Shown here in pieces: positions 15,601 to 58,733 of a stretch of 64,000 bases of DNA. Below the pieces are notes generated by a model that ran no database searches, had not been told where the DNA came from, and saw only the letters and a list, made by a program, of their open reading frames with translations. The DNA lies in assembly GCA_950097015.1 (NCBI GenBank), contig CATNEN010000034.1, positions 4,340,001-4,404,000 on the forward strand. The letters run 5' to 3'. Positions within the stretch are counted from its first letter, which is position 1. Each line of letters starts with the position of its first letter. Position numbers and translations under genes: made by a program. The stretch comes from Macrostomum hystrix (taxonomy: Eukaryota > Animalia > Platyhelminthes).

Positions 15601-18600
15601 TGACTTTCGGATAGTTTAGGGAAGAGTTTAGTGGCTTTCGGTCAGTTTAGGGAAGAGTTTAGTGGCTTTCGGATAGTTTAGGGAAGAGTTTAGTGACTTT
15701 CGGATAGTTTAGGGAAGAGTTTAGTGGCTTTCGGACAGTTTAGGGAAGAGTTTAGTGACTTTCGGATAGTTTAGGGAAGAGTTTAGTGGCTTTCGGTCAG
15801 TTTAGGGAAGAGTTTAGTGGCTTTCGGACAGTTTAGGGAAGAGTTTAGTGACTTTCGGACAGTTTAGGGAAGAGTTTAGTGACTTTCGGTCAGTTTAGGG
15901 AAGAGTTTAGTGGCTTTCGGACAGTTTAGGGAAGAGTTTAGTGACTTTCGGACAGTTTAGGGAAGAGTTTAGTGGCTTTCGGTCAGTTTAGGGAAGAGTT
16001 TAGTGGCTTTCGGTCAGTTTAGGGAAGAGTTTAGTGACTTTCGGACAGTTTAGGGAAGAGTTTAGTGACTTTCGGTCAGTTTAGGGAAGAGTTTAGTGGC
16101 TTTCGGTCAGTTTAGGGAAGAGTTTAGTGACTTTCGGATAGTTTAGGGAAGAGTTTAGTGGCTTTCGGACAGTTTAGGGAAGAGTTTAGTGACTTTCGGA
16201 CAGTTTAGGGAAGAGTTTAGGGACTTTCGGACAGTTTAGGGAAGAGTTTAGTGGCTTTCGGTCAGTTTAGGGAAGAGTTTAGTGGCTTTCGGACAGTTTA
16301 GGGAAGAGTTTAGTGACTTTCGGACAGTTTAGGGAAAAGTTTAGTGACTTTCGGACAGTTTAGGGAAGAGTTTAGTGACTTTCGGTCAGTTTAGGGAAGA
16401 GTTTAGTGGCTTTCGGACAGTTTAGGGAAGAGTTTAGTGGCTTTCGGACAGTTTAGGGAAGAGTTTAGTGACTTTCGGTCAGTTTAGGGAAGAGTTTAGT
16501 GACTTTCGGACAGTTTAGGGAAGAGTTTAGTGACTTTCAGTCAGTTTAGGGAAGAGTTTAGTGGCTTTCGGACAGTTTAGGGAAGAGTTTAGTGACTTTC
16601 GGACAGTTTAGGGAAGAGTTTAGTGACTTTCGGACAGTTTAGGGAAGAGTTTAGTGACTTTCGGTCAGTTTAGGGAAGAGTTTAGTGACTTTCGGACAGT
16701 TTAGGGAAGAGTTTAGTGACTTTCGGTCAGTTTAGGGAAGAGTTTAGTGACTTTCGGTCAGTTTAGGGAAGAGTTTAGTGGCTTTCGGACAGTTTAGGGA
16801 AGAGTTTAGTGACTTTCGGACAGTTTAGGGAAGAGTTTAGTGACTTTCGGACAGTTTAGGGAAGAGTTTAGTGACTTTCGGACAGTTTAGGGAAGAGTTT
16901 AGTGACTTTCGGACAGTTTAGGGAAGAGTTTAGTGACTTTCGGTCAGTTTAGGGAAGAGTTTAGTGGCTTTCGGACAGTTTAGGGAAGAGTTTAGTGGCT
17001 TTCGGACAGTTTAGGGAAGAGTTTAGTGACTTTCGGTCAGTTTAGGGAAGAGTTTAGTGGCTTTCGGACAGTTTAGGGAAGAGTTTAGTGACTTTCAGTC
17101 AGTTTAGGGAAGAGTTTAGTGGCTTTCGGACAGTTTAGGGAAGAGTTTAGTGACTTTCGGACAGTTTAGGGAAGAGTTTAGTGACTTTCGGACAGTTTAG
17201 GGAAGAGTTTAGTGGCTTTCGGACAGTTTAGGGAAGAGTTTAGTGACTTTCGGACAGTTTAGGGAAGAGTTTAGTGGCTTTCGGACAGTTTAGGGAAGAG
17301 TTTAGTGGCTTTCGGACAGTTTAGGGAAGAGTTTAGTGACTTTCGGTCAGTTTAGGGAAGAGTTTAGTGACTTTCGGTCAGTTTAGGGAAGAGTTTAGTG
17401 ACTTTCGGTCAGTTTAGGGAAGAGTTTAGTGGCTTTCGGTCAGTTTAGGGAAGAGTTTAGTGACTTTCGGTCAGTTTAGGGAAGAGTTTAGTGACTTTCG
17501 GACAGTTTAGGGAAGAGTTTAGTGACTTTCGGACAGTTTAGGGAAGAGTTTAGTGACTTTCGGTCAGTTTAGGGAAGAGTTTAGTGACTTTCGGACAGTT
17601 TAGGGAAGAGTTTAGTGGCTTTCGGTCAGTTTAAGGAAGAGTTTAGTGACTTTCGGATAGTTTAGGGAAGAGTTTAGTGGCTTTCGGTCAGTTTAGGGAA
17701 GAGTTTAGTGGCTTTCGGATAGTTTAGGGAAGAGTTTAGTGACTTTCGGATAGTTTAGGGAAGAGTTTAGTGGCTTTCGGACAGTTTAGGGAAGAGTTTA
17801 GTGACTTTCGGATAGTTTAGGGAAGAGTTTAGTGGCTTTCGGTCAGTTTAGGGAAGAGTTTAGTGGCTTTCGGACAGTTTAGGGAAGAGTTTAGTGACTT
17901 TCGGACAGTTTAGGGAAGAGTTTAGTGACTTTCGGTCAGTTTAGGGAAGAGTTTAGTGGCTTTCGGACAGTTTAGGGAAGAGTTTAGTGACTTTCGGACA
18001 GTTTAGGGAAGAGTTTAGTGGCTTTCGGTCAGTTTAGGGAAGAGTTTAGTGGCTTTCGGTCAGTTTAGGGAAGAGTTTAGTGACTTTCGGACAGTTTAGG
18101 GAAGAGTTTAGTGACTTTCGGTCAGTTTAGGGAAGAGTTTAGTGGCTTTCGGTCAGTTTAGGGAAGAGTTTAGTGACTTTCGGATAGTTTAGGGAAGAGT
18201 TTAGTGGCTTTCGGACAGTTTAGGGAAGAGTTTAGTGACTTTCGGACAGTTTAGGGAAGAGTTTAGGGACTTTCGGACAGTTTAGGGAAGAGTTTAGTGG
18301 CTTTCGGTCAGTTTAGGGAAGAGTTTAGTGGCTTTCGGACAGTTTAGGGAAGAGTTTAGTGACTTTCGGACAGTTTAGGGAAAAGTTTAGTGACTTTCGG
18401 ACAGTTTAGGGAAGAGTTTAGTGACTTTCGGTCAGTTTAGGGAAGAGTTTAGTGGCTTTCGGACAGTTTAGGGAAGAGTTTAGTGGCTTTCGGACAGTTT
18501 AGGGAAGAGTTTAGTGACTTTCGGTCAGTTTAGGGAAGAGTTTAGTGACTTTCGGACAGTTTAGGGAAGAGTTTAGTGACTTTCAGTCAGTTTAGGGAAG

Positions 18601-19560
18601 AGTTTAGTGGCTTTCGGACAGTTTAGGGAAGAGTTTAGTGACTTTCGGACAGTTTAGGGAAGAGTTTAGTGACTTTCGGACAGTTTAGGGAAGAGTTTAG
18701 TGACTTTCGGTCAGTTTAGGGAAGAGTTTAGTGACTTTCGGACAGTTTAGGGAAGAGTTTAGTGACTTTCGGTCAGTTTAGGGAAGAGTTTAGTGACTTT
18801 CGGTCAGTTTAGGGAAGAGTTTAGTGGCTTTCGGACAGTTTAGGGAAGAGTTTAGTGACTTTCGGACAGTTTAGGGAAGAGTTTAGTGACTTTCGGACAG
18901 TTTAGGGAAGAGTTTAGTGACTTTCGGACAGTTTAGGGAAGAGTTTAGTGACTTTCGGACAGTTTAGGGAAGAGTTTAGTGACTTTCGGTCAGTTTAGGG
19001 AAGAGTTTAGTGGCTTTCGGACAGTTTAGGGAAGAGTTTAGTGGCTTTCGGACAGTTTAGGGAAGAGTTTAGTGACTTTCGGTCAGTTTAGGGAAGAGTT
19101 TAGTGGCTTTCGGACAGTTTAGGGAAGAGTTTAGTGACTTTCAGTCAGTTTAGGGAAGAGTTTAGTGGCTTTCGGACAGTTTAGGGAAGAGTTTAGTGAC
19201 TTTCGGACAGTTTAGGGAAGAGTTTAGTGACTTTCGGACAGTTTAGGGAAGAGTTTAGTGACTTTCGGTCAGTTTAGGGAAGAGTTTAGTGACTTTCGGA
19301 CAGTTTAGGGAAGAGTTTAGTGACTTTCGGACAGTTTAGGGAAGAGTTTAGTGACTTTCGGACAGTTTAGGGAAGAGTTTAGTGACTTTCGGACAGTTTA
19401 GGGAAGAGTTTAGTGACTTTCGGACAGTTTAGGGAAGAGTTTAGTGGCTTTCGGTCAGTTTAGGGAAGAGTTTAGTGACTTTCGGACAGTTTAGGGAAGA
19501 GTTTAGTGACTTTCGGACAGTTTAGGGGAGAGTTTAGTGGCTTTCGAACAGTTTAGGGGA
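12700..19560. repeat. 31-bp satellite GTTTAGGGAAGAGTTTAGTGACTTTCGGWCA with higher-order structure
   Basis: About 220 copies with no spacers. Rare variants recur at 806, 558 and 2046 bp offsets. Confidence 0.98.
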
Positions 19561-19925
19561 GTGTTTAATGTTTTTTTAAGCACTTTTTGGGACTTTTGGG
19601 CAGTTTAAGGAAGAACTGTGGGCTTACAGGCGAAAACATCTGAATTAGTTTTTTGCGCATTGTCGATTGTATTTCAGTTTAGCGGTGAAGTCCCATTTAG
19701 GAAATGAAGAGTGTGACTGGCACAGTGATACGCAAACGCATTCTTGATTCCCAGCTTGCAGATCGTAGTCGATTTGCATATCAATACCTTGTGGTGCTAC
19801 TAGTGCAGTTTGAGTGGGTGCGAATCTTACACTCTGTGCGCCAGCCGAGAGACTAACGAAATTCTTGAAAGAAAACACGCTATTTTTTTCTTCCGATTTT
19901 GTTTTAAATACACCCGATTACACCC

Positions 19926-20245
19926 CATTCAGTCCAGTCCAGTCCACTCCACTCCACTCCGCTCCACTCCACTCCACTCTACTCTACTCCACTCCACTCC
20001 AGTCCACTCCACTCCACTCCACTCCACTCCACTCCACTCCACTCCACTCCACTCCACTCCACTCCAGTCCACTCCACTCCACTCCACTCCACTCCACTCC
20101 ACTCTACTCCAGTCCACTCTAATCCACTCCGCTCCACTCCACTCTACTCCACTCTACTCCATTCACACTGCACTCCAGTCCACTCCACTCTACTCCATTC
20201 ACACTGCACTCCAGTCCACTCCACTCCACTCCATTCACACTGCAC
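19926..20245. repeat. (CCACT)n pentanucleotide repeat
   Basis: Direct tandem array. Confidence 0.95.
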
Positions 20246-20568
20246 TCGAAAAGCGTATCAGAGTTGAATAAAAGTTTTTCTAGAACCACTTAGTAAAGCG
20301 GTTTTATCTTCAAACGCTACTTAGTTAGAACAGTAGTATTTTGCACACGTTTCTAAACTGATCGGCCAACACTGATCAAACATATACTCAACTGAGCCTG
20401 TGTTTGACAACAGTCTATTTACCTTCTGTTTCTGCCAAGAAAGTTATAAAGAAGCAATGCTTGATTGATTCCTTTTAATTCCTCTGCGAGCAGAAAGTTG
20501 AGAGTCAGTGAGATCACTAGCAGTGGCACCTGCTCTGTTAAGCTTATCAGGAAACTACAGAAGTCGAA

Positions 20569-23500
20569 ATGCTGCTTTTATTTGCTAGCCTCCTTGTACT
20601 GGCGCATTGTAACGAGGTGAGTTGGAACTTGGGGAAACCAGTCAATAAATCTTAGGCTGAATATTCAACTCCAGTTATCCACGCAAAACAGCCCACACCT
20701 ATCTTCTTATGAGTGAATATCCTATTTTCGATTATCCCAAACTGAATATCCCATTTTTAATTATCCCGCACCGAATATCGAAGTTTCAATTATTCCGCAC
20801 CGTATATCCCATTTTCAATTATCCCGCACCGAATATCCCAGTTTCAATTATCCCGCACCGAATATCCCAGTTTCAATTATCCCGCACCGAATATCCCATT
20901 TTCAATTATCCCGCACCGAATATCCCAGTTTCAATTATCCCGCACCGAATATCCCAGTTTCAATTATCCCGCACCGAATATCCCAGTTTCAATTATCCCG
21001 CACCGAATATCCCAGTTTCAATTATCCCGCACCGAATATCCCATTTTCAATTATCCCGCACCGAATGTCCCATTTTCAATTATCCCGCACCGAATATCCC
21101 AGTTTCAATTATCCCGCACCGAATATCCCAGTTTCAATTATCCCGCACCGAATATCCCAGTTTCAATTATCCCGCACCGAATATCCCATTTTCAATTATC
21201 CCGCACCGAATATCCCAATTTCAATTATCCCGCACCGAATATCGAAGTTTCAATTATCCCGCACCGAATATCCCAGTTTCAATTATCCCGCACCGAATAT
21301 CCCAGTTTCAATTATCCCGCACCGAATATCCCATTTTCAATTATCCCGCACCGAATATCCCAATTTCAATTATCCCGCACCGAATATGGAAGTTTCAATT
21401 ATCCCGCACCGAATATCCCAGTTTCAATTATCCCGCACCGAATATCCCAGTTTCAATTATCCCGCACCGAATATCCCAGTTTCAATTATCCCGCACCGAA
21501 TATCCCAGTTTCAATTATCCCGCACCGAATATCCCAGTTTCAATTATCCCGCACCGAATATCCCATTTTCAATTATCCCGCACCGAATATCCCAGTTTCA
21601 ATTATCCCGCACCGAATATCCCAGTTTCAATTATCCCGCACCGAATATCCCAGTTTCAATTATCCCGCACCGAATATCCCAGTTTCAATTATCCCGCACC
21701 GAATATCCCATTTTCAATTATCCCGCACCGAATGTCCCATTTTCAATTATCCCGCACCGAATATCCCAGTTTCAATTATCCCGCACCGAATATCCCAGTT
21801 TCAATTATCCCGCACCGAATATCCCAGTTTCAATTATCCCGCACCGAATATCGAAGTTTCAATTATCCCGCACCGAATATCCCAATTTCAATTATCCCGC
21901 ACCGAATATCGAAGTTTCAATTATCCCGCACCGAATATCCCAGTTTCAATTATCCCGCACCGAATATCCCAGTTTCAATTATCCCGCACCGAATATCCCA
22001 TTTTCAATTATCCCGCACCGAATATCCCAGTTTCAATTATCCCGCACCGAATATCCCAGTTTCAATTATCCCGCACCGAATATCCCAGTTTCAATTATCC
22101 CGCACCGAATATCCCAGTTTCAATTATCCCGCACCGAATATCCCAGTTTCAATTATCCCGCACCGAATATCCCAGTTTCAATTATCCCGCACCGAATATC
22201 CCAGTTTCAATTATCCCGCACCGAATATCCCAGTTTCAATTATCCTGCACCGAATATCCCATTTTCAATTATCCCGCACTGAATATCCGAGTTTCAATTA
22301 TCCCGCACCGAATATCCTAGTTTCAATTATCCCGCACCGAATATCCCAGTTTCAATTATCCCGCACCGAATATCCCAGTTTCAATTATCCCGCACCGAAT
22401 ATCCCAGTTTCAATTATCCCGCACCGAATATCCCAGTTTCAATTATCCCGCACCGAATATCCCAGTTTCAATTATCCCGCACCGAATATCCCATTTTCAA
22501 TTATCCCGCACTGAATATCCGAGTTTCAATTATCCCGCACCGAATATCCTAGTTTCAATTATCCCGCACCGAATATCCCAGTTTCAATTATCCCGCACCG
22601 AATATCCCAGTTTCAATCCGAAATCAATATCGCGATTCAAAATTCGACACATTAGTTATGCTAAGCCGAATCCCACGATGAAATATTTCTCACTAAACAT
22701 TCTAAGCCAAATGTCCTATGCCTGTAAATCCATATTGCATGCAGCACATCTGGGTGGCCCAAATTGACGGAGGCAGTCAGGTGGCTCAGTGGGTCGCCGA
22801 CGCCCACGGACTAATTAACGACGGGCAGGTGAGTTGAGCGCTGAAATCGTGGAATCGGAAAGAATATGGAATTGGGAAGAATATGGAATTGGGAAGAATA
22901 TGGAATTGGGAAGATTGTGAAACTGGGAAGATTGTGGAATTCGGAAGATTGTGGATTTTGGGAAGATTGTGGAATTGGGAAGATTGTGAAACTGGGAAGA
23001 TTGTGGAATTTGGAAGATTGTGGAATTGGGGAGAATATGGAATTGGGAAGATTGAAAAATTAGGAAGATTTTGGAATTGGGAGTAATATAAAATTTATTT
23101 GGAGTTTAGCAGTAGCGGTTTCACTCTACTTTCAGTAGTATGGTAACGGACATGAATGCTAATTTCAGATAATCTTATCAGAAATTATCTCTTGATTACT
23201 CCAGAATTCCGAATTTCATAATTATTTCAGATACCTTATCTAAATAACAAGTACGTGTTCCGCCTGCCCAGTCTTCGAATCACCAACCAGAGCTCGGCCT
23301 TGAGTTTACTCGAAGCTGCCATAGTCCGGGCGCGGCAGGGCGAAGTCAACAACAGTTTGTTGCAGCATCCGGAAGTGGCATGGGTGTCTTATCAGACGGG
23401 GCGCAAGAGAACGAAAAGAGACATATTGGAGTTTAATGAGGTCAGCGTCTGTGACTCTGGGATCTATAATTATAATTGCTGGAGGGCTGTTGGCAAGGGC

Positions 23501-26500
23501 ACATCATTTGGTGACAGTAGACCCGCTGCCAGCGAGGAGGCAGTTCTGCCCATTTCGCTGACTCCCGAGCACACGTTCACACAGGTGTGTACAACAGCCC
23601 TGATCTACAACAGCTGCGGGTCTAGTGTCATGAAATTATGTACTATATAAAAAATAAATTTATTTTTTATATGGGAGTAGTAATTATGGGATAATTGTAT
23701 ACGAGATTTTTTAATTTCGAATTTTTATAAAGAATTTTTAATATGTGGTTTGGGGAATTATCAGTCTCAACTTCCGAAACTGGCCTCAGATCCCAGGCCA
23801 GCACCAGATCCCACCAGACTGGCAGTTTCCCGGCATCAAATCCGGTTCAAACCGGTTCTCGCCGAGCGGCCTATCATTGGCCGCCGGCTCAAACGAGCCG
23901 TTTATCGACCCATTCTGGCCGCGCCAGTGGTACCTGCACGATGCCCGCGGTAGCGACCGACAGCCGCGCCTCGACATCATGGGCGTCGCCGCCGCCTGGT
24001 CCTGGAACTTCACCGGCCGCGGCGTCACGGTTGCCGTGGTGGACGACGGCGTTGAGAGCGACCATCCGGATCTGGTGGACGCCTTCGACCCGGACGTCAG
24101 CTACGATTATTCACGAGGAGTCAGGGAGCCCAAACCTGTGTACTTTAACTATGTGCAACAGCTGTGAGAGCGCGCTACACTGTATCCCAAATTACCCCGT
24201 TCCCAAAAAAAAAAATCCGATTCCTAACCCTGAATCTCACAAAAATCCCACTACCAACCCTGAATTCCACAAAAATCCCACTACCAACCCTGAATTCCAC
24301 AAAAATCCCATTCCCAACCCTGAATCTCACAAAAATCCCATTACCAACCCTGAATTCCACAAAAATCCCATTAACAAACCCTGAATGTCACAAAAATCCC
24401 ATTCCCAAACCCTGAATCCCACAAAAATCCCATTCCCAAACCCTGAATCCCACAAAAATCCCATTCCCAAACCCTGAATGCCACAAAAATCTCATTAACA
24501 AACCCTGAATCCCACAAAAATCCCATTACCAAACCCTGAATGCCACAAAAATCCCATTCCTAATTATAAATGCCGTCGAAATAACTTTCTCAACCTCAAA
24601 AAATCCCATGGAAATCCTATTCCTAACCCGAATTTCAATAGAAGTCCCACTACCAACCCTTACTAAAATATAAATCCCATTCCCAATTCTAAATCCCATA
24701 GAAATCTCACTCCCAACCCTAAACTCCAATAAAATTTCATTCCATTCCATCATTTTAGATATAAACCTTGTCACTTATGACCCATGTTTCCGTATATCCT
24801 TACCGATATTAATATCATATTTATTAAACACCCTAGCTAAGATGAAGTTCTTCAGTTAATAAGTGGTTAAAATTTCATAAAATTTGCAGAGAGGACGGTA
24901 GAACTGGAACCTGGTGAGTAACGAGAAAAAACTTCACATTTTTTTACAAGTCAATTCCTTTAACTACAAAGCAAATAATCGCCATTAATAAACTAACAAT
25001 TATTGTAAAAAAGACCATAGCAACCGCATTCCCACTGCGCAGGCACGGCACCCGCTGCTCCGGGGTTATTGCGATGTCGGCCAACAACACCTTCTGTGGA
25101 GTTGGCATCGCTTTCAACGCTCGCATCGGAGGGGTGAAAATTCTTGAAGGCGACGATAGCGACCTCCGCGAAGCTCGCGGCCTGACGCACGCGCTAGACA
25201 AAGTGCACGTGTACTCGTCCAGCTGGGGACCCGGAGACGACGGCGCCATCATGGAGGGGCCGCGCGATCTGACGCGGGAAGCCTTCAGGGTCGGCGCCCA
25301 ACTTGGCCGCAACGGCCTCGGCGCCATCTACGTCTGGGCGTCGGGCAACGGCGGCGGCAACAGCGACAACTGCAACTGCGACGGCTACTCGGCCTCCGTG
25401 TACACCCTGACAGTCAGCAGTGTCAGCCAGAGCCTCGACTCGCCCTGGTACGCCGAGGAATGCTCGGCTACGATGACAGCAGCTTATTCAAGCGGCGAGG
25501 ATGAGCAGCAGCAGGTGGTGACCACGGATCTCAGACATCAGTGCGCTGCGGACTTCAGCGGCACATCAGCGGCAGCACCGATGGTTTCAGCGATGGCCGC
25601 ACTGGCACTGGAGGCCAAGTGAGTCGCAGTTCATCGATTTATTTAAAAAACGCACTTTTCCAAGATCGTCTGCTTTCAGTAGCGATGACGGAAAAGCTTG
25701 CTAATCTTTGAATGGGAAGTAGAAAATGGGAAGTAGAGAATGGGAAGTAGAGAATGGGAAGTAGAGAATGGGAATTAGAGAATGGGAAGTAGAGAATGGG
25801 AAGTAGAGAATGGGAAGTAGAGAATGGGAAGTAGAGAATGGGAAGTAGAGAATGGGAAGTAGAGAATGGGTAGTAGAGAATGGGTAGTAGAGAATGGGAA
25901 GTAGAGAATGGGAAGTAGAGAATAAGAAGTAGAGAATGGGTAGTAGACAGTGGGTAGTAGACAATGGGTAGTAGAGAATGGGAAGTAGAGAATGGGAAGT
26001 AGAGAATGGGTAGTAGAGAAAGGGTAGTAGAGAATGGGAAGTAGAGAATGGGAAGTAGAGAATAAGAAGTAGAGAATGGGTAGTAGACAGTGGGTAGTAG
26101 ACAATGGGTAGAAGAGAATAGGAAGTAGAGAATTGTAAGTAGAGAATGGGTACTCTCTGGACTCTCCTATCCGAGCGGTTGGGAGTTCGAATTTTTCAGT
26201 GCAATTTTTAATAGATTTTTTTTATGGCCCTTAAACGATTTTTGCGGGCTTCAAATTATCCACCACCCACCGATGCAGCCCGAACATCACGTGGCGCGAC
26301 TTTCAGCACGCAGTAGTCTGGACGTCGCAGACGCGGCAGCTTCGTCGGCGAAGTCTAGCCGGTTGGCGTCGAAACGCTGCCGGGCATCGTTATCATCACC
26401 GCTTCGGCTTCGGCATCGTCAACGTGGCGGCCATCATCCGGCTGACGGCACCGGGACGGTGGCAACGAGTGCCGGAGGCGGCAACGGTGGAGCTCGACGG

Positions 26501-29500
26501 ATGGAGCTGTGGAAACGGCTGGTGGGCGCTGGGTGTGGATGGGATGGGATGGGATGGGATGGGGATGGGATGGGATGGGGATGGGATAGGATGGGGATGG
26601 GGTTGGGGATGGGGATGGTGATGGGGATGGTGATGGGGATGGGGATCGGGATGTGGATCGGATGGGGATGTGGATGGGATAGGTATGTGGGTAGGATGGG
26701 GATGGGGATGGGGATGGGGATGGGGATTGGGAATGGGGATCGGGATGTGGATCGGATGGGGATGTGGATGGGATAGGTATGTGGGTAGGATGGGATAGGG
26801 ATGTGGACGGAATGGGTATGGGGATATGGATGTGGATGGGATGGGGATGTGGACGGGATGGGAATAGGATGGGGATGGGGATGGGGATGGTTATAGGAAT
26901 AAGGATGCGGATGGGAATCAGGATGGGGATGGGAATCAGGATGTGCATGGGAATGAGGATGGGGTTGGGAATGTGGATGGGGCTGAGGATTGTGTTGGGG
27001 ATGTGTATGGGGGATGGCGTTGGGGATTGGGATGGGAAGCAAATGAAACGCTCGTAGTGTGGAATGATAAAAAGTCAATTCCCTGTATTAAATATTGTGT
27101 TGGGGTAACTTTTTCACTAAAACTTTAGCTGGCTACCTTTTCTAAAAAACTTTTTTTATCCACTGCCTGTAAACTAATTCGTCTCCGATTGGCCAGGGCC
27201 GTTAGCCAATCAGAGCCTCTCAAATGCGAACTGGAGGTCAGCGAACGGGAGGCTAGTCCAATCAGATTTCTGGAGCACGTGCAGGTCGTCCTGAGCATGA
27301 GCTACTCTGAGCGAGGCGCCCTGGCCATCTATGTGACCTCAGGAGCTGGTGAGTCACGTGACTAACTGGGGGTTGGGCTGCTATGGGAATAAATAAGGAG
27401 GCAATGTGTATGGGAATGAGGATGGGAACGACGAGGGGAATGAGGATGGGAATGAGGATGGGTATGGGAATGAGGATGGGGATGGGAATGAGGATGGGGA
27501 TGGGAATGAGGATGGGTATGGGAATGAGGATGGGGATGGGAATGAGGATGGGGATAGGAATGAGGATGGGGATGGGAATGAGGATGAGGATGGGAATGAG
27601 GATGGGGATAGGAATGAGGATGGGGATGGGAATGAGGATGGGTATGGGAATGAGGATGGGGATGGGAATGAGGATGGGGATGGGAATGAGGATGGGGATG
27701 GGAATGAGGATGGGGATGGGAATGAGGATGGGGATGGGAATGAGGATGGGGATGGGAATGAGGATGGGTATGGGAATGAGGATGGGGATGGGAATGAGGA
27801 TGGGGATAGGAATGAGGATGGGGATAGGAATGAGGATGGGTATGGGGATGGGGATGGGGATGGGAGTTGGGAATGGGGATGGGGATGGGGATGGGGATGG
27901 GGATGGGGATGGAAATCAGGATGGGGATGGGAATGAGGATGAGAATGCGGATGTGGAATGGGAATGAAGATGAGAATGGGGATGGGAATGAGCATTGAAT
28001 ATTGGAATGATGATGGTACTGTGAGAGATACAATTCAGACTACTGACAACAGTAGAAAAGCAAAGACTTGGCTGCAAAACTCTCACATAACACTAAAAAA
28101 TATCGCCATAAAAATGGCAAGCTTAAAAGAGACTTCTGTGCACACTAAGAGTGGTGGGAGAGGACTGCGTGTGGCTATGGCTGACTGACGAAGGCAAACA
28201 AGCCAGAACCGCTAAGAATAGAATTGAGTTTGTTGACGGCTGTGAAATAGGGATGTGGATGGTGCTTTCAGCTACTGAAGCACACGGAGTAATATTAATC
28301 CTACAATACTACTACCGCCATTATGCAGTAGTATAAAATGAAAAAGATTAGAAAACTTGTACAAAATCTGCAAAATTAATTTTTCTATAAATATGTATTT
28401 CAGGTTCTCAAAGCCAGCTGCTAACCCCGAGACCAAGGGACAACTCAAATGAAGGAATCATCAACTGGGACTTTCTCACTGTGCATTTCTGGGGTGAAAA
28501 TTCCCGCGGCAAATGGCGACTGCTGATAGAAGATCAGGTAATGGGAGGCGCTCTATTCTCATCTATATTTTCTGCATTGCTCAGCTTTCGCTTGGTTGCT
28601 ATAGCAACAGTTCCTATTTTGTAAAATGGAAGATGGGAGATTTCTCATCCATTGAGAAATGGGAGATATTTTTAGCGAAGCATTGGACTAACCTAGGTTT
28701 AAAATCAAGCTTGTTGAATGAAAATATGACTGAAACAGGTGAGGCTAAGACAGGTGAGGCTGAAACAGGTAAGGCTGAAACAGGTGAGACTGAGACAGGT
28801 GAGACTGAAACAGGTGAGACTGAAACAGGTGAGACTGAAACAAGTGAGACTAAAACAGGTGAGACTGAGACAGGTGAGACTGAGACAGGTGAGACTGAAA
28901 CAGGTGAGACTGAAACAAGTGAGACTAAAACAGGTGAGACTGAGACAGGTGAGACTGAGACAGGTGAGACTGAAACAGGTGAGACTAAAACAGGTGAGAC
29001 TGAGACAGGTGAGACTGAGACAGGTGAGACTGAGACAGGTGAGACTGAAACAAGTGAGACTGAGACAGGTGAGACTGAGACAGGTGAGACTGAGACAGGT
29101 GAGACTGAAACAGGTGAGACTGAAACAAGTGAGACTAAAACAGGTGAGACTGAGACAGGTGAGACTGAGACAGGTGAGACTGAAACAGGTGAGACTAAAA
29201 CAGGTGAGACTGAGACAGGTGAGACTGAGACAGGTGAGACTGAGACAGGTGAGACTGAAACAAGTGAGACTGAGACAGGTGAGACTGAAACAGGTGAGAC
29301 TAAAACAGGTGAGACTGAGACAGGTGAGACTGAGACAGGTGAGACTGAGACAGGTGAGACTGAAACAAGTGAGACTGAGACAGGTGAGACTGAGACAGGT
29401 GAGACTGAGACAGGTGAGACTGAAACAGGCGAGACTGAGACAGGCGAGACTGAGACAGGTGAGACTGAGACAGGTGAGACTGAGACAGGTGAGACTGAAA

Positions 29501-29802
29501 CAGGTGAGACTGAAACAAGTGAGACTAAAACAGGTGAGACTGAAACAGGCGAGACTGAGACAGGCGAGACTGAGACAGGTGAGACTGAGACAGGTGAGAC
29601 TAAAACAGGTGAGACTGAAACAGGTGAGACTGAACAGGTCTGATTCGACTCTCCATTGCAGTCTGGCAGGGGTGACGGGCATCTCCGCAGCGGCCGTGTC
29701 CAGTCGCTGCGCCTGCGACTGCTCGGCACAGCGAACATGCCGCGGCACAGGGCGCGCACGGCTGGCCGACGTCGAGACGACGACGATAACGCAGATGACT
29801 GA
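20569..29802 (+). CDS. Subtilisin/kexin-like proprotein convertase (furin/PC1-like, S8B peptidase plus P domain), about 661 aa, 10 exons, no TM or Cys-rich tail
   Basis: Exons 20569-20616 (signal MLLLFASLLVLAHCNE), 22745-22828, 23231-23440 (RKRTKR|D propeptide site), about 23790-24163 (start uncertain), 24890-24913, 25043-25618, 26279-26521, 27197-27348, 28404-28537, 29662-29802. Catalytic D (VVDDG), H (HGTRC), oxyanion N (SGNGG) and S (GTSAAAP) are intact. P domain motifs LEHVQ and WGEN are present. Confidence 0.92.
20715..22615. repeat. 29-bp minisatellite TTCAATTATCCCGCACCGAATATCCCAGT in convertase intron 1
   Basis: About 64 copies. Confidence 0.97.
22850..23085. repeat. 17-bp minisatellite (same family as 10230-11215), convertase intron 2
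   Basis: AATATGGAATTGGGAAG units. Confidence 0.9.
23510..23605 (-). mobile_element. 5'-truncated SINE family A fragment
   Basis: GTTCTGCCCATTTCGCTGACTCCCGAGCACAC..CAGGTGTGTACA matches the family A 3' body. Confidence 0.6.
24205..24570. repeat. About 30-bp minisatellite CACAAAAATCCCATTCCCAACCCTGAATC
   Basis: About 12 copies in a convertase intron. Confidence 0.9.
25710..26150. repeat. 14-bp minisatellite GAATGGGAAGTAGA
   Basis: About 31 copies. Confidence 0.93.
26530..27035. repeat. G-rich (GGGAT)-based low-complexity array
   Basis: Degenerate GGGATG repeats in a convertase intron. Confidence 0.85.
27385..27990. repeat. 18-bp minisatellite GGGAATGAGGATGGGGAT
   Basis: Tandem copies in a convertase intron. 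Confidence 0.9.
28725..29640. repeat. 15-bp minisatellite GAGACTGAAACAGGT in convertase intron 9
   Basis: About 61 copies. Confidence 0.97.
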
Positions 29803-29832
29803 GGAGACTAAGGAGTTTCTGGTGAGACTGAA

Positions 29833-29833
<1 letters not shown>

Positions 29834-29879
<46 letters not shown>

Positions 29880-29880
29880 A
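29834..29880. repeat. (ATCT)n microsatellite
   Basis: About 11 copies. Confidence 0.9.
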
Positions 29881-30424
29881 CTTTCATTACCTTTTTCATT
29901 TCAGATGTACCGACTTCCCCGTGAAGCCCTGAAGCCATGAAGATTGATTTTAAGAACAGCGCAAACACTACAGCTGCACGCTTTCATGCTTCGCTTTAAT
30001 TCAATCACCAAATAAAAAAAATAATCACCAAGAATAACAATCTCGCACACATAGCATGTCCACATTAATTGACATTTCTTTCGCAGAGAGGGGTAAAGAA
30101 ACACACACACACAATCGCTGTATCCATGCAGATTCAACTCAAGATTTAATTAATAATAAATTGCCTAAACAGTAAAACTCTATGACGATTGCCAATGAGA
30201 GTTTAAGCCTACCTGAAAAAAAGCTAGTGCTTTCCTGCAATGGCACAAAGTGTCAAATAATTGGTTGCCTACTTAAGGGCTGCATCTGCGGACTCAAGTC
30301 TTCAGGCTAAAAATAATTGCAAACTGAAAAATAAAGGTTACACATGAAAGTTCTATGAAAATATTGAACTAATTCAAGGCTTTCTCATTCTTGTCTTCAC
30401 ATCCTTATCTCGGTGCATATTACT

Positions 30425-33400
30425 TAAGAAACCCACCTGATACACCTGGGACCCACCTTATACACCTGGAACCCACCTGATACCAATGGAACCCACCTGA
30501 TACCAATGGAACCCACCTGATACCAATGGAACCCAACTGATGCCAATGGAACCCACCTGATACCAATGGAACCCACCTGATACCAATGGAACCCAACTGA
30601 TACCAATGGAACCCAACTGATACCAATGGAACCCAACTGATACCAATGGAACCCACCTGATACCAATGGATCCCAACTGATACCAATGGAACCCACCTGA
30701 AACCAATGGAATCCACCTGATACCAATGGAATCCACCTGATACCAATGGAACCCACCTGATACCAATGGAACCCGCCTGATACCAATGGAACCCACCTGA
30801 TACCAATGGAACCCACCTGATCCACCTGATACCAGTGAAACCCACCTGATACCAATGGAATCCACCTGATACCAATGGAATCCACCTGATACCAATGGAA
30901 TCCACCTGATACCAATGGAACCCACCTGATACACCTGGTACCCACCTGATACCAATGAAACCCACCTGATACCAATGGAACCCACCTGATACCAATGGAA
31001 CCCACCTGATACCAATGGAACCCACCTGATACCAATGAAACCCACCTGATACCAATGGAACCCGCCTGATACCAGTGAAACCCACCTGATACCAATGGAA
31101 TCCACCTGATACCAATGGAATCCACCTGATACCAATGGAACCCACCTGATACACCTGGTACCCACCTGATACCAATGAAACCCACCTGATACACCTGGTA
31201 CCCACCTGATACCAATGGAACCCACCTGATACACCTGGTACCCACCTGATACCAATGAAACCCACCTGATACCAATGGAACCCACCTGATACCAATGGAA
31301 CCCACCTGATACCAATGGAACCCACCTGATACCAATGAAACCCACCTGATACCAATGGAACCCACCTGATCCACCTGATACCAGTGAAACCCACCTGATA
31401 CCAATGGAATCCACCTGATACCAATGGAATCCACCTGATACCAATGGAACCCTCCTGATACCAATGGAACCCACCTGAGACCAATGGAACCTGCCTGATA
31501 CACCTGGAACCCACCTGACACCAATGGAACCCTCCTGATACCAATGGAATCCGGCTGATACCAATGGAACCCACCTGAGACCAATGGAACCCACCTGATA
31601 CCAATGGAACCCACCTGATACCAATGGAACCCACCTGATACCAATGGAACCCTCCTGATACCAATGGAACCCACCTGAGACCAATGGAAATCGCCTGATA
31701 CCAATGGAACCCACCTGAGACCAATGGAACCCTCCTGATACCAATGGAACCCACCTGATACCAATGGAACCCTCCTGATACCAATGGAACCCACCTGAGA
31801 CCAATGGAAATCGCCTGATACCAATGGAACCCACCTGAGACCAATGGAACCCACCTGAGACCAATGGAACCAGCCTGATACCAATGGAACCCACCTGATA
31901 CCAATGGAACCCTCCTGATACCAATGGAACCCACCTGAGACCAATGGAACCTGCCTGATACACCTGGAACCCACCTGACACCAATGGAACCCTCCTGATA
32001 CCAATGGAACCCGGCTGATACCAATGGAACCCACCTGAGACCAATGGAACCCGCCTGATACCAATGGAACCCACCTGATACCAATGGAACCCTCCTGATA
32101 CCAATGGAACCCACCTGAGACCAATGGAACCCGCCTGATACCAATGGAACCCACCTGATACCAATGGAACCCACCTGAGACCGATGGAACCAGCCTGATA
32201 CCAATGGAACCCACCTGATACCAATGGAACCCTCCTGATACCAATGGAACCCACCTGAGACCAATGGAACCTGCCTGATACACCTGGAACCCGCCTGATA
32301 TCCTGATACACCTGGAACCCTCCTGATATCCTGATACACCTGGAACCCTCCTGATACCAATAGAAAACCACCTGATACCAATGGAATCCACCTGATACCA
32401 ATGGAATCCACCTGATACCAATGGAACCCACCTGATACCAATGGAACCCACCTGATACACCTGGAACCCTCCTGATATCCTGATACACCTGGAACCCTCC
32501 TGATACCAATAGAAAACCACCTGATACCAATGGAATCCACCTGATACCAATGGAACCCACCTGATACCAATGGAACCCACCTGATACACCTGGAACCCTC
32601 CTGATATCCTGATACACCTGGAACCCTCCTGATACCAATGGAACCCACCTGATACCAATGGAACCCACCTGATACCAATGGAACCCACCTGATACCAATG
32701 GAACCCGCCTGATACCAATGGAACCCACCTGATACCAATGGAACCCGCCTGATACCAATGGAACCCACCTGATACCTATGGAATCCACCTGATACCAGTG
32801 AAACCCACCTGATACACCTGGAACCCTCCTGATATCCTGATACACCTGGAACCCTCCTGATACCAATAGAAAACCACCTGATACCAATGGAACCCACCTG
32901 AGACCAATGGAATCCACCTGATACCAATGTAACCCACCTGATACCAATAGAATCCACCTGATACCAATGGAACCCACCTGATACACCTGGAACCCTCCTG
33001 ATATCCTGATACACCTGGAACCCTCCTGATACCAATGGAACCCACCTGATACCAATGGAATCCACCTGATACCAATGGAACCCACCTGATACACCTGGTA
33101 CCCACCTAATACCAATGAAACCCACCTGATACCAATGGAACCCTCCTGATACCAATGGAACCCACCTGAGACCAATGGAACCCTCCTGATACCATTGGAA
33201 CCCACCTGAGACCAATGGAACCCGCCTGATACCAATGGAACCCACCTGAGACCAATGGAACCCGCCTGATACCAATGGAACCCACCTGATACACCTGGAA
33301 CCCTCCTGATATCCTGATACACCTGGAACCCTCCTGATACCAATAGAAAACCACCTGATACCAATGGAACCCACCTGATACCAATGGAATCCACCTGATA

Positions 33401-35190
33401 CCAATGGAACCCACCTGATACTAATGGAACCCACCTGATACACCTGGAACCCTCCTGATATCCTGATACACCTGGAACCCTCCTGATACCAATGGAACCC
33501 ACCTGATACCAATGGAACCCACCTGATACACCTGGTACCCACCTAATACCAATGAAACCCAGCTGATACCAATGGAACCCTCCTGATACCAATGGAACCC
33601 ACCTGATACCAATGGAACCCGCCTGATACCAATGGAACCCGCCTGATACCAATGGAACCCGCCTGATACCAATGGAACCCACCTGAGACCAATGGAACCC
33701 ACCTGAGACCAATGGAATCCACCTGATACCAATGGAATCCACCTGATACCAATGGAATCCACCTGATGCTAATGGAATCCACCTGATACCAATGGAATGC
33801 ACCTGAGACCAATGGAACCCACCTGAGACCAATGGAATCCACCTGAGACCAATGGAACCTGCCTGATACACCTGGAACCCACCTGACACCAATGGAACCC
33901 TCCTGATACCAATGGAACCCGGCTGATACCAATGGAACCCACCTGAGACCAATGGAACCCGCCTGATACCAATGGAACCCACCTGATACCAATGGAACCC
34001 TCCTGATACCAATGGAACCCACCTGAGACCAATGGAACCCGCCTGATACCAATGGAACCCACCTGATACCAATGGAACCCACCTGAGACCGATGGAACCA
34101 GCCTGATACCAATGGAACCCACCTGATACCAATGGAACCCTCCTGATACCAATGGAACCCACCTGAGACCAATGGAACCTGCCTGATACACCTGGAACCC
34201 TCCTGATATCCTGATACACCTGGAACCCTCCTGATACCAATGGAACCCACCTGAGACCAATGGAACCTGCCTGATACACCTGGAACCCTCCTGATATCCT
34301 GATACACCTGGAACCCTCCTGATATCCTGATACACCTGGAACCCTCCTGATACCAATAGAAAACCACCTGATACCAATGGAATCCACCTGATACCAATGG
34401 AATCCACCTGATACCAATGGAACCCACCTGATACCAATGGAACCCACCTGATACACCTGGAACCCTCCTGATATCCTGATACACCTGGAACCCTCCTGAT
34501 ACCAATAGAAAACCACCTGATACCAATGGAATCCACCTGATACCAATGGAATCCACCTGATACCAATGGAACCCACCTGATACCAATGGAACCCACCTGA
34601 TACACCTGGAACCCTCCTGATATCCTGATACACCTGGAACCCTCCTGATACCAATGGAACCCACCTGATACCAATGGAACCCACCTGATACCAATGGAAC
34701 CCACCTGATACCAATGGAACCCGCCTGATACCAATGGAACCCACCTGATACCAATGGAACCCGCCTGATACCAATGGAACCCACCTGATACCTATGGAAT
34801 CCACCTGATACCAGTGAAACCCACCTGATACACCTGGAACCCTCCTGATATCCTGATACACCTGGAACCCTCCTGATACCAATAGAAAACCACCTGATAC
34901 CAATGGAACCCACCTGAGACCAATGGAATCCACCTGATACCAATGTAACCCACCTGATACCAATAGAATCCACCTGATACCAATGGAACCCACCTGATAC
35001 ACCTGGAACCCTCCTGATATCCTGATACACCTGGAACCCTCCTGATACCAATGGAACCCACCTGATACCAATGGAATCCACCTGATACCAATGGAATGCA
35101 CCTGATACAAATGGAACCCACCTGATACCAATGGAATCCACCTGATGCTAATGGAATCCACCTGATGCTAATGGAATCCACCTGGTACAA
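30425..35190. repeat. 20-bp satellite CCCACCTGATACCAATGGAA with variant units and a 2016-bp internal duplication
   Basis: Array of about 4.75 kb; variants CCTATGG and AATGTAAC recur 2016 bp apart. Confidence 0.97.
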
Positions 35191-53700: not shown

Positions 53701-54754
53701 GACTACTCAAACTCACCAGTACCTCAGACTACTCAAACTCACCATTTCGTCACACCATTCAGACTCACCAGTTCATCATCAGACTGCTCAAACTCACTAG
53801 TTCCTCAGACTACTCAAACTCACCAGTTCCTCAGACTACTCCAATTCACCAGTTCCTCACACTACTCAAACTCACCAGTTCCTCAGACTACTCAAACTCA
53901 CCAGTTCCTCAGACTACTCTAATTCACCAGTTCCTCAGACTACTCAAACTCACCAGTTCCTCAGACTACTCAAACTCACCAGTTCCTCAGACTACTCAAA
54001 CTCACCAGTTCCTCAGACTACTCAAACTCACCAGTTCCTCAGACTACTCAAACTCACCAGTTCCTCAGACTACTCCAATTCACCAGTTCCTCACACTACT
54101 CAAACTCACCAGTTCCTCAGACTACTCAAACTCACCAGTTCCTCAGACTACTCAAACTCACTAGTTCCTCAGACTACTCAAACTCACCAGTTCCTCAGAC
54201 TACTCCAATTCACCAGTTCCTCACACTACTCAAACTCACCAGTTCCTCAGACTACTCAAACTCACCAGTTCCTCAGACTACTCAAACTCACCAGTTCCTC
54301 AGACTACTCAAACTCACCAGTTCCTCAGACTACTCAAACTCACCAGTTCCTCAGACTACTCCAATTCACCAGTTCCTCACACTACTCAAACTCACCAGTT
54401 CCTCAGACTACTCAAACTCACCAGTTCCTCAGACTACTCAAACTCACCAGTTCCTCAGACTACTCAAACTCACCAGTTCCTCAGACTACTCAAACTCACC
54501 AGTTCCTCAGACTACTCCAATTCACCAGTTCCTCAGACTACTCCAATTCACCAGTTCCTCAGACTACTCCAATTCACCAGTTCCTCAGACTACTCAAACT
54601 ACAGTATGTCTGACTCACAGATATTCTGAAAATGATTTCGCAGGCTAAACAGACGGCCATAGCAATCTGGCGGTGTAGCCATTGTCTGATCTTCGTTCTG
54701 ATCGGCTTCAAAATCATCCTCAACCGCTTGGGTGCCGACGATTGGAGCAGACAT
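47708..54754 (-). CDS. CHEK2: Checkpoint kinase 2 (FHA plus Ser/Thr kinase), about 536 aa, 9 coding exons
   Basis: Exons 54754-54619, 53568-53450, 53357-53276, 53179-53023, 50933-50712, 49433-49325, 49240-49202, 49130-48919, 48242-47708 are all phase-consistent. FHA motifs IGR, SQEH, SSNGTFVNG; kinase motifs GNGAFGEV, YAMK, HPNVV, HRDLKPEN, DFG, LAPE, DVWSLG. Confidence 0.93.
48405..48885. repeat. 31-bp minisatellite in CHEK2 last intron
   Basis: TTGGGATTTCAAACTGAGGATCTGAGGGTAG, about 15 copies. Confidence 0.92.
49475..50660. repeat. 21-bp minisatellite CCATAGACTAGCCATTCTATT in CHEK2 intron 5
   Basis: About 56 copies. Confidence 0.96.
50970..52895. repeat. About 30-bp minisatellite GGGAAGGGGAAATGGCAGAT(CA)nCT in CHEK2 intron 4
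   Basis: Units vary in length; a 464-bp block is duplicated (variant TGGGTAGGGG at 51405 and 51869). Confidence 0.96.
53680..54600. repeat. 26-bp minisatellite CCAGTTCCTCAGACTACTCAAACTCA in CHEK2 intron 1
   Basis: About 34 copies. Confidence 0.96.
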
Positions 54755-54903: not shown

Positions 54904-54909
54904 TTTATT
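54904..54909 (-). terminator. Putative poly(A) signal of MRM2
   Basis: First AATAAA on the minus strand after the MRM2 3' array, followed by a U/GU-rich tract at about 54875-54845. Confidence 0.45.
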
Positions 54910-55019: not shown

Positions 55020-55800
55020 AAAGCGGTGTGACAGTCACAGTTCCAGCAAGCGGTGTGCCAGTCACAGTCACAGTTCCAGCAAGCGGTGTGCCAGTCACAG
55101 TCACAGTTCCAGCAAGCGGTGTGCCAGTCACAGTCACAGTTCCAGCAAGCGGTGTGCCAGTCACAGTCACAGTTCCAGCAAGCTGTGTGCCAGTCACAGT
55201 CACAGTTCCAGCAAGCGGTGTGCCAGTCACAGTCACAGTTCCAGCAAGCGGTGTGCCAGTCACAGTCACAGTTCCAGCAAGCGGTGTGCCAGTCACAGTC
55301 ACAGTTCCAGCAAGCGGTGTGCCAGTCACAGTCACAGTTCCAGCAAGCTGTGTGCCAGTCACAGTCACAGTTCCAGCAAGCGGTGTGCCAGTCACAGTCA
55401 CAGTTCCAGCAAGCGGTGTGCCAGTCACAGTCACAGTTCCAGCAAGCGGTGTGACAGTCACAGTCACAGTTCCAGCAAGCGGTGTGCCAGTCACAGTCAC
55501 AGTTCCAGCAAGCGGTGTGCCAGTCACAGTCACAGTTCCAGCAAGCGGTGTGCCAGTCACAGTCACAGTTCCAGCAAGCGGTGTGCCAGTCACAGTCACA
55601 GTTCCAGCAAGCGGTGTGCCAGTCACAGTCACAGTTCCAGCAAGCTGTGTGCCAGTCACAGTCACAGTTCCAGCAAGCGGTGTGCCAGTCACAGTCACAG
55701 TTCCAGCAAGCGGTGTGCCAGTCACAGTCACAGTTCCAGCAAGCGGTGTGACAGTCACAGTCACAGTTCCAGCAAGCGGTGTGCCAGTCACAGTCACAGC
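55020..55800. repeat. 33-bp minisatellite TTCCAGCAAGCGGTGTGCCAGTCACAGTCACAG immediately after the MRM2 stop
   Basis: About 24 copies. Confidence 0.97.
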
Positions 55801-55802
55801 TG

Positions 55803-57017
55803 TCAGCTAGCCGGCAGTGTGAGTCCTCTCGCCACAAAGTAGAACTCAGCTGAGTCGCTGCGGCTGGCCGGAGGCTTGACTCGGCGCACCCCGCCAGCGA
55901 AGAACTTTCGCAGCGGCGCCTCCAGTCGCGGAGTCTCGGCGCTGTCCCACAGTTTGCAGATAAAACCGGCGCCAGGACGGCCCAATTGAAGGCAAAGCTG
56001 CAGCGCAAGCTCGCAGAGTTCAACGCAGACGGAGGCGTCGAGGCTGCGCTCGCCGGAGGCGCTGGGCGCCATGTCGGAGACCAGCCAGTCGACTTGCCTA
56101 TTGGCAAGAGCATTGCGGAGGGCGGCCAGACAGTCTGGCGAGCGGATGTCCAGCTCGGATAGGATTACTGCGTCTGGCACCGGGGCGATGTGCTGCTGGT
56201 CGAATGCCACCACCAGGCCTTGGCTGCGGGCCGGCTGCGGCACCTGGAAATTAAGTGAAAGTAACGCAGCACAAAAATAGCAAAGGTATGAAGGAACTAA
56301 GTATGAAAGTAGCGAAGGAGAAAATGTAACGGAGTGTCAAAGCAGGAAAGGTAGCGAAGGATGTAGGGAACGGAGATGGAAAGCAGCGAATCGTGAAAGT
56401 AGCGAAGTAGGGAACAATAAAAATAACGCAACAAGAAAGTAGCGAAGTATAAAAGCAACAGAGCATGATAGTAGAGTAGAAGGGAAGTAACAGAGCATGC
56501 AAGAAGCCAAGGAGGAAAGTAACGGAGCGTGCAAGTAGCGAAGGATGAAAGTAACGGAACATAAAAGTAGCTATCAGGATGAAAGTAACGGAGCATGAAA
56601 GTTGCTATAAGCATGAAAGTAACGGAGCATGAAAGTAGCTATAAGCATGAAAGTAACGGAGCATGAAAGTAGCGATAAGGATGAAAGTAACGGAGCATGA
56701 AAGTAGCTATAAGGATGAAAGTAACGGAGCATGAAAGAAGCTTTTAGGAAAAGTTGCGGGGGATTAAATAAGCGAACCTCGGGTCCCTTGAGCAGCCTGG
56801 CCAGAACCTGGGTCCAGGATCCGGGCGCGGCTCCGCACTCCACAACACACTGGCCAGGCTGGAACAGTTGCAGTTTGTCGTGCAACTCCAAAAGCTTGTA
56901 GGCGCTGCGGCACCTGTAGGACTCGTAGCGGGCCTTGCGCACGTAGACATCGCGCAGCTGGCGCACAACCCACGGGTTGCCAGGATTGCGGATTGCGGAA
57001 TAGAGCCGGCGCTGAAA
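55803..57017 (-). CDS. MRM2: FtsJ/RrmJ-family 2'-O-ribose rRNA methyltransferase, mitochondrial type; 5' end lacks an in-frame ATG
   Basis: Exons 57017(or 57011)-56778 and 56243-55803. Motifs WVVRQLRDVYV, RCRSAYKL, ECGAAPGSW, SDMAP, ICKL, SRSDSAEFY give an intact K-D-K-E tetrad. The start is unresolved (see findings). Confidence 0.85.
56300..56740. repeat. Degenerate GAAAGTAACGGAGCAT-type repeat in MRM2 intron
   Basis: More homogeneous towards 56570-56735. Confidence 0.8.
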
Positions 57018-57184
57018 CTGGTGGGTTTCGGGATCGTAATCCTCGATTCACGCAAGACATCCCGAAAGTACAGTATTAGGGATTCATGTACCCAATTAGG
57101 CGTCACAGATTTTTTACAATTTTAGATTGAAATCCCCCCGTTAGAACTCACATATCCCCTAGATTGGGATTTTTCCCTTCTAAA

Positions 57185-57785
57185 ATGGCACAGATCCCCT
57201 AGAATTGCAGTTTGGGATCTTGTTCCCTAATTAGATGGCACGGATCCCCTAGAACTGCAGTTTGGTATCTTGTTCCCTAATTAGATGTCACAGATCCCCT
57301 AGAACTGCAGTTTGGGATCTTGCTCCCTAATTAGATGTCACAGATCCCCTAGAACTGCAGTTTGGGATCTTGCTCCCTAATTAGATGTCACAGATCCCCT
57401 AGAACTGCAGTTTGGGATCTTGCTCTCTAATTAGATGTCACAGATCCCCTAGAACTGCAGTTTGGGATCTTGCTCCCTAATTAGATGTCACAGATCCCCT
57501 AGAACTGCAGTTTGGGATCTTGCTCCCTAATTAGATGTCACAGATACCCTAGAACTGCAGTTTGGGATCTTGCTCCCTAATTAGATGGCACGGATCCGCT
57601 AGAACTGCAGTTTGGGATCTTGTTCCCTAATTAGATGGCACGGATCCCCTAGAACTGCAGTTTGGGATCTTGCTCCCTAATTAGATGTCACAGATACCCT
57701 AGAACTGCAGTTTGGGATCTTGTTCCCTAATTAGATGGCACGGATCCCCTAGAACTGCAGTTTGGGATCTTGCTCCCTAATTAGA
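57185..57785. repeat. 50-bp minisatellite TTTGGGATCTTGCTCCCTAATTAGATGTCACAGATCCCCTAGAACTGCAG
   Basis: About 12 copies upstream of MRM2. Confidence 0.95.
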
Positions 57786-58733
57786 GGTGACTAATTACTG
57801 TGACAGTTTAAAAATCCCCTAGAGAAAGGCACAATAACTCACCAATGGGAACTGTGAAGTGACAAAGACCAAACAAAGTATTGCATACTACCTGGTATTA
57901 GATAATAATCAATGTTATTTAGCACTATTTAAATGTGCATGTATTATTTATCACAAGACTGACATCAAAACTAGAAATTAAACATTACATCCATCCAAAT
58001 TAGGCCTAAAAATTAAGCACAAGAATTGAAAAGCAAAAAATATGAATTACAAACAAAAAATATGTCCTCACGATATTTGTACATTTTAGTCATTTCAATA
58101 TATAATCATGAAAGTAATCGAACCTTAAAATAGTATATTATTATTAAGCATTTTTTAAAGTAATGTATTGTCACGGACAACGTTAAAATACAAGTAAATA
58201 AAACGAGCAGCAAATTATAATAAGATTGCGTTGAGATACAACGGCAGGACATTGGAATTGTCATCTAATCAAAAAAGATAACACATATTCATAACCAATA
58301 GATGCGCTAACTTTCACACATCGGATATTATATGACTAGATAAATGATTATTAACGGTAATAACAAAGCGACTTTAGACACGCAACTTGAAATAATGTCA
58401 GACACGAGGTTGTAGAAACACGTGCGCAATGAGAAATGTTATTTAGACGAGAGAGGGGGAACAGGTGAGACAGGCAAGGGACAGGTAAGACAGGTGAGAC
58501 AGGACGTTAAGAGACGGACGTTGTGACAAAGAGACAGGAAAATAAGAATGCTTTTATAGAGACAAGAAACAGGAGGGTCTGCAAGAAATATGAAAACAGA
58601 ATAGGAATACAGGTAGAGTAGCTCGCTTGACAACAATTAAATAGAGAAAACTCAAAATCAATTATGAGTCTGAGTGTTTAATTGATGAGTCTGTGTGTTT
58701 AATTGATGAGTCTGAGTGTTTAATTGATGAGTC

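Follow-up and report, generated by a model that had tools for sequence, protein, structure and literature searches.

How does a gene whose reading frame holds no start codon ahead of its conserved domain come to be translated? The question is raised by a gene of the FtsJ/MRM2 type in Macrostomum hystrix, which RNA contigs and translation resolve into two exons on the minus strand at 57017-55803 of the window, by which we mean the whole stretch of 64,000 nucleotides that was analysed. A sequence-only reading had noticed that an in-frame TGA near 57050 is followed by no ATG before the conserved region, and had proposed that the initiator is supplied in trans by a spliced leader ending in AUG. 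Assembled RNA contigs now place such a leader at the start of the first exon, and we give a probability of about 0.85 to the explanation as a whole, that is, the junction, a start at the leader AUG, the requirement for trans-splicing, and a targeting role of the N-terminus. All features described below lie on the minus strand unless the plus strand is named.

The first exon (56778-57017; 240 nt, 80 codons, phase 0), as defined by its translation and by contig coverage, reads FQRRLYSAIRNPGNPW...LLKGPE without any in-frame ATG, and carries the SAM-binding motif GAAPGSW together with the first catalytic Lys. It is followed by a GT..AG intron in phase 0 (56244-56777; donor GAG/GTTCGC, acceptor TTTCCAG/GTG), behind which exon 2 (55803-56243) continues in phase 0 and translates as 146 codons, open to a TGA stop at 55805-55803; this exon contributes the catalytic Asp (SDMAP), Lys (CKLWD), and Glu (SAEFY). 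The intron consists mostly of a degenerate 34-bp tandem array (56420-56749). Within this array, at 56607-56677, one unspliced contig from the sequencing run here called X3 is 69 nt, or two array units, shorter than the window, a difference that points to variation in copy number among alleles, paralogues, or strains.

With the two exons searched separately rather than as the joined protein, the Pfam profile FtsJ (PF01728, 181 positions) was matched by exon 1 over its positions 1-42 (E 4.8e-13) and by exon 2 over 45-180 (E 4.2e-27), so that the profile, split over the exons, amounts to one complete domain. In the alignment, invariant columns comprise K41, G62, P65, G66, and W68 in exon 1, where they include the GAAPGSW motif (G-x-x-P-G-x-W), as well as D57, K97, and E133 in exon 2. 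The column of K41 and those of D57, K97, and E133 are what we take to be the catalytic tetrad K-D-K-E of RlmE, and conservation of both the tetrad and GAAPGSW indicates that the reading frame is under selection. Among solved structures, exon 2 matched human MRM2 best (2nyu, 5.4e-22; 7o9k, 9.2e-22), whereas the scores were 4.4e-12 for E. coli RlmE and, for the paralogues, 1.9e-11 (Trm7/FTSJ1-type) and 1e-10 or weaker (FTSJ3/Spb1). Furthermore, the named animal matches of a protein word search were all annotated as "rRNA methyltransferase 2, mitochondrial", with RlmE as the annotation of the bacterial matches; the candidates of that search did not include a Macrostomum protein corresponding to the gene, the best identity being 45%. 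By structure-match scores and by named animal matches, the gene lies nearer to MRM2 than to FTSJ1/Trm7 or FTSJ3/Spb1, and judged from these comparisons it is the MRM2 orthologue, encoding a predicted mitochondrial 16S rRNA 2'-O-ribose methyltransferase of the RlmE/FtsJ family.

Read from the TGA at 57050-57048, the FtsJ frame begins IEDYDPETHQFQRRLYSAIRNPGNPWVVRQ... (in a fuller reading, IEDYDPETHQFQRRLYSAIRNPGNPWVVRQLRDVYVRKARYESYRCRSAYKLLEL...GAAPGSWTQVLARLLKGPE) and is devoid of Met through the whole of exon 1, which bears out the sequence-only reading. This TGA closes the frame 10 codons 5' of the acceptor that the contigs identify; as part of the outron, it does not occur in the mRNA. Not until residue 58 of exon 2, within the catalytic SDMAP motif, does the gene have an in-frame Met, and initiation at this residue would therefore yield a product without the SAM-binding motif. 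The ATGs at 57060, 57087, 57153, and 56950 are all out of frame with the FtsJ ORF. Among these, the nearest upstream one (57058-57060), correctly recognised beforehand as being out of frame, has an offset of 2 and sits in the outron under zero contig cover, and that at 56950, the sole other AUG in exon 1, opens an out-of-frame ORF. The gene thus possesses no in-frame AUG of its own able to give a complete protein.

An upstream exon bearing the start codon was sought as well. An exon-like segment at 57843-57886 has its ATG (57886) 44 nt before a GTGAGT donor (57842); it has no RNA support and ends in phase 2, which is incompatible with the phase-0 acceptor, as had been argued from the letters of the DNA. 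Taking every minus-strand ATG between 58992 and 57020 whose open frame leads to a phase-0 GT donor, we obtained 12 chance candidates. Only one of them has a donor close to GTRAGT, namely the ATG at 57060 combined with a donor at 57051; it would need an intron of 34 nt, has no RNA support, and was rejected. Neither does any phase-0 upstream coding exon appear in the RNA contigs, which agrees with the earlier expectation. That every AG of this stretch yields a phase-0 exon start also proved accurate, for all four AGs in 57110-56950 do so (57043/42, 57019/18, 57013/12, and 56959/58), although the pattern weighs little, because three of the four lie in or adjoin coding sequence that is rich in CAG and GAG codons.

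The transcript itself was traced in public sequencing runs. Six runs from two studies contain 55700-57200, none of them recorded as RNA, and four were aligned to 55800-57184, a stretch picked as lying between two long tandem arrays. Contigs of three runs (X1, X3, and X4) skip 534 bases between 56241 and 56776; when the cut is shifted by 2, the skipped segment reads CT..AC on the plus strand, which on the minus strand corresponds to GT..AG. Such splicing marks the contigs as RNA-derived, and they fix the intron at 56777-56244 and the end of exon 1 at 56778. Two of them, record 5 of X3 (263 nt) and record 6 of X4 (735 nt), map to 57018-56776, where the genome match ends at 57018, and the 735-nt contig spans both exons, running onward across the intron to 56241-55800.

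Beyond position 57018, the X3 and X4 contigs share an identical overhang of 20 nt, ATGCAATAAATTGAGTCTTC on the plus strand, so that in mRNA sense they read GAAGACTCAATTTATTGCAT, then g57018, then TTTCAGCGCCGG. Overhang and g57018 together equal exactly the last 21 nt of the Macrostomum lignano leader (...GAAGACTCAATTTATTGCATG). The complete leader of that species is 35 nt long, CGGTCTCTTACTGCGAAGACTCAATTTATTGCATG, and ends in TTGCATG (PMC8629364), and it is strongly conserved across Macrostomum species (PMC10468722). The predicted AUG-ending leader is thereby recovered from the transcripts, the overhang ...TTGCAT being completed by g57018 to the published terminus. The match reaches 57018 because the terminal G of the leader coincides with the G of the genomic AG; the AG rule and the leader's own ...AUG/GU donor set the junction as leader-AUG/UUU, where the acceptor AG occupies 57018-57019 and the exon opens at 57017, in phase 0. 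Accordingly, the mRNA reads SL-AUG/UUU CAG CGC in frame (MFQRRLYSAIRN), for a protein start M-FQRRLYSAIRN. Two marks of a leader-AUG-initiated ORF (slORF) are hence present, a leader that ends in AUG and its joining at an AG acceptor with this AUG in frame. Leader addition had been proposed at 57017 or 57011, of which the former is borne out by the X3 and X4 contigs; a junction at 57011 was seen in no contig of the four runs.

In X3 and X4, nothing but the leader is joined to the acceptor, and 57022-57184 is bare of contigs in all four runs (depth 0), although gaps in contig cover prove nothing by themselves. The leader junction comes from assembled contigs of one study (X3 and X4), the second study (X1) supporting the intron only; contigs of this kind lose rare isoforms and do not give transcript levels or true 5' ends. 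Intron-retaining contigs occur in X3 and X4 at lower depth (56279-56805), yet the outron at 57022-57184 is uncovered, and the presence of intron pieces in the absence of outron fits a removal of the outron by trans-splicing before cis-splicing of intron 1. A gene for the SL RNA was not found in the window, even with up to 3 mismatches allowed.

The MRM2 pre-mRNA is thus trans-spliced at the AG 57019-57018 to the 35-nt leader ending in AUG, by which the leader AUG comes to stand directly before the codon UUU at 57017, in phase 0. No AUG precedes it in the mature mRNA, and it is the sole in-frame AUG before the catalytic core. Being both the first and the only usable in-frame AUG, it is where scanning ribosomes would start. 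No stop intervenes between the leader AUG and the FtsJ ORF, and the predicted product, made up of Met + 80 + 146, would comprise about 227 residues and start with MFQRRLYSAIRNPGNPW. Translation from the leader AUG is what we infer from the position and frame of the junction, in conjunction with precedent. Since MRM2 lacks a start codon of its own, a functional enzyme would require trans-splicing, and this dependence can be soundly inferred.

To this explanation, several alternatives need to be compared. The true start might reside in an unseen upstream cis-spliced exon, perhaps encoding a longer presequence, in which case the trans-spliced form would be one isoform among others, and possibly a minor or non-mitochondrial one. 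In its favour is the greater distance between N-terminus and conserved Trp in animal orthologues (see below), and contigs leave room for rare forms, such as a minor cis-spliced form or one using the acceptors at 57011 or 57041. However, both RNA runs show the leader and nothing else at the acceptor, the region 57022-57184 carries no contig, the exon-like segment ends in the wrong phase, and the single near-consensus phase-0 option (57060/57051) demands an intron of 34 nt, so that we grant this alternative a small chance. A far smaller one, indeed almost negligible, is left to an assembly error of 1 bp within 57020-57060 that would hide an ordinary start at the ATG 57060. The idea draws some appeal from the fact that this ATG is situated only 43 nt upstream in a frame that stays open through exon 1 (ORF 56764-57060), but the observed mRNA does not contain 57060, and in two runs the leader is joined at 57017; because the stretch around 57060 is absent from the mRNA, an indel 5' of the acceptor would be irrelevant to it.

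It is also conceivable that the leader AUG is skipped or poorly used, the product being non-functional, made at a low or regulated level, or initiated at a non-AUG codon. Judged by the vertebrate Kozak rule, U at both -3 and +4 gives the leader AUG a weak context, and a ribosome passing over it would next encounter the AUG at 56950, which opens the out-of-frame ORF. Against this stands the conservation of all catalytic and SAM-binding residues, which speaks for selection on the frame, and an intact enzyme is not to be had from any other in-frame AUG. Furthermore, a leader AUG has been reported to act as initiator in Schistosoma, according to the accounts of Cheng et al. 2006 given in PMC9851317 and PMC12582326. 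We consider poor use of the leader AUG improbable, at a level just below that of the unseen exon.

What the resulting N-terminus might do is a separate matter. Computed on the leader Met plus the exon 1 translation, residues 1-16 (MFQRRLYSAIRNPGNP) include 3 Arg and no Asp or Glu, the first acidic residue being Asp 24, in keeping with the Arg-rich, acid-free N-terminus foreseen by the sequence-only reading. The 11-residue helical hydrophobic moment is 0.74, a value reached by 270 of 5000 shuffles. By these weak and self-chosen descriptors, the N-terminus has the composition of a mitochondrial matrix-targeting presequence, namely rich in Arg/Lys, free of acidic residues, and capable of forming an amphipathic helix. 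That this short, basic segment serves as a mitochondrial targeting signal, which would fit the expected location of MRM2, seems to us slightly favoured over the opposite. Only 16 residues precede the conserved Trp, as compared to 28-44 in nine animal-type sequences (five of the nine with an animal MRM2 name, four unnamed) and 27-31 in two alphaproteobacterial-type RlmE sequences, so that this part of the protein has roughly half the usual length, and cleavage of a presequence of the ordinary size is unlikely. In addition, QRRLYSAIR aligns opposite the basic RRLxxxxR N-terminal tail of bacterial RlmE-like proteins, and the basic, acid-free composition would thus in part be a trait of the family; the segment may be the rRNA-binding tail of this family, not a dedicated presequence.

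The gene is embedded in a neighbourhood rich in tandem repeats. Between the upstream Sec1-family gene and the MRM2 acceptor, the outron or intergenic space holds a 50-bp array of 12 copies (57185-57785; 95% matches). Each unit contains CTGCAG and TTCTAG, and as a consequence the outron is full of AGs, which are unused in the contigs seen. A second array (55031-55799), made up of 23 near-identical copies of 33 bp, follows the MRM2 stop at a distance of 4 nt. In contig records 3 and 6, 30 nt lie past 55800, which places at least the first 30 nt of this array in the 3' UTR; ahead of an AATAAA (54904-54909), the likely polyadenylation signal of MRM2 as read from the sequence, this UTR probably contains a pure tandem repeat of about 770 nt. 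About 150 nt further on follows the putative acceptor of the next gene, TTTTATTTTCAG (AG 54759-54758), and then GAA ATG (54754) of its predicted first exon. This acceptor precedes the gene's own ATG at 54754 by 3 nt; leader addition at this point would likewise put the leader AUG in frame, for a protein start M-E-M-S.... On the other side, the last exon of the Sec1-family gene, which we read as VPS45-like, is recognised by the Pfam Sec1 profile (E 5.2e-14), and its ORF ends at 58993, about 2 kb before the MRM2 acceptor including the 600-bp array. Elsewhere in the window, kilobase blocks of constant and extreme GC skew are seen at 13000-22000 (+0.55, then -0.43 to -0.54) and at 26000-35000 (+0.57 to +0.67, then about -0.35), which are probably long satellite or tandem arrays.

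The use of a leader AUG as initiator has already been established in flatworms, and MRM2 is a confirmed new example in another lineage rather than a new mechanism; our understanding of trans-splicing is not changed by it. For Schistosoma mansoni, PMC9851317 cites Cheng et al. 2006 to the effect that 28% of trans-spliced transcripts have the leader AUG in frame and that over 40 cDNAs depend on it; the same work is also cited in PMC12582326, PMC5832876, and PMC7653826. For Macrostomum, the leader was described as likely ending in an ATG start codon (PMC10468722), and the paper on the Macrostomum lignano leader (PMC8629364) does not discuss a start role of this AUG. As a precedent for a mitochondrial start encoded by the leader, we considered the phytochelatin synthase of S. 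mansoni, SmPCS, which has a predicted mitochondrial leader of 12 residues; it is not trans-spliced (PMC3101182) and was set aside.

Its significance is that a mechanism documented in Schistosoma is extended to an early-branching, free-living flatworm. Moreover, genes of this kind will be truncated or lost where a gene finder insists on an ATG in the genome or a pipeline removes the leader in full, its ATG included. A wider proposal, to which we assign a little less than an even chance, is that Macrostomum harbours a set of conserved housekeeping genes whose own start codons have been lost and which depend entirely on the leader AUG, with MRM2 as the member documented in RNA, and that the complete mitochondrial import signal of MRM2 is formed by the leader Met and a shortened tail of 15 residues. 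If true, the leader AUG as an initiator would predate the parasitic flatworms, and trans-splicing would gate the maturation of the mitoribosome. As Macrostomum is a model for transgenesis, the role of the leader AUG is directly testable there.

To place this gene among known systems, it has in common with human MRM2/FTSJ2 (2nyu, 7o9k) and with RlmE (FtsJ, 1eiz) the FtsJ signature, the GAAPGSW motif, and the K-D-K-E residues. It differs from animal MRM2 orthologues in its shorter stretch ahead of the conserved Trp and in that its initiator codon would come from another RNA. With respect to its surroundings, the succession of Sec1-family gene, MRM2, and next gene resembles, in layout, the operon-like SL clusters of nematodes and flatworms, as three genes share one strand and the predicted poly(A) signal has an operon-like spacing to the next acceptor; in contrast to such clusters, the gap between the Sec1-family gene and MRM2 is long and occupied by an array. 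The closest likeness is to the leader-AUG genes of Schistosoma, in which, as in Macrostomum MRM2, a leader ending in AUG is joined in frame at an AG acceptor to a gene that has no in-frame AUG of its own before its conserved domain. While the earlier work concerned the parasite S. mansoni, the present case, in which a start at the leader AUG is likely, would bring the free-living, early-branching Macrostomum under the same scheme.
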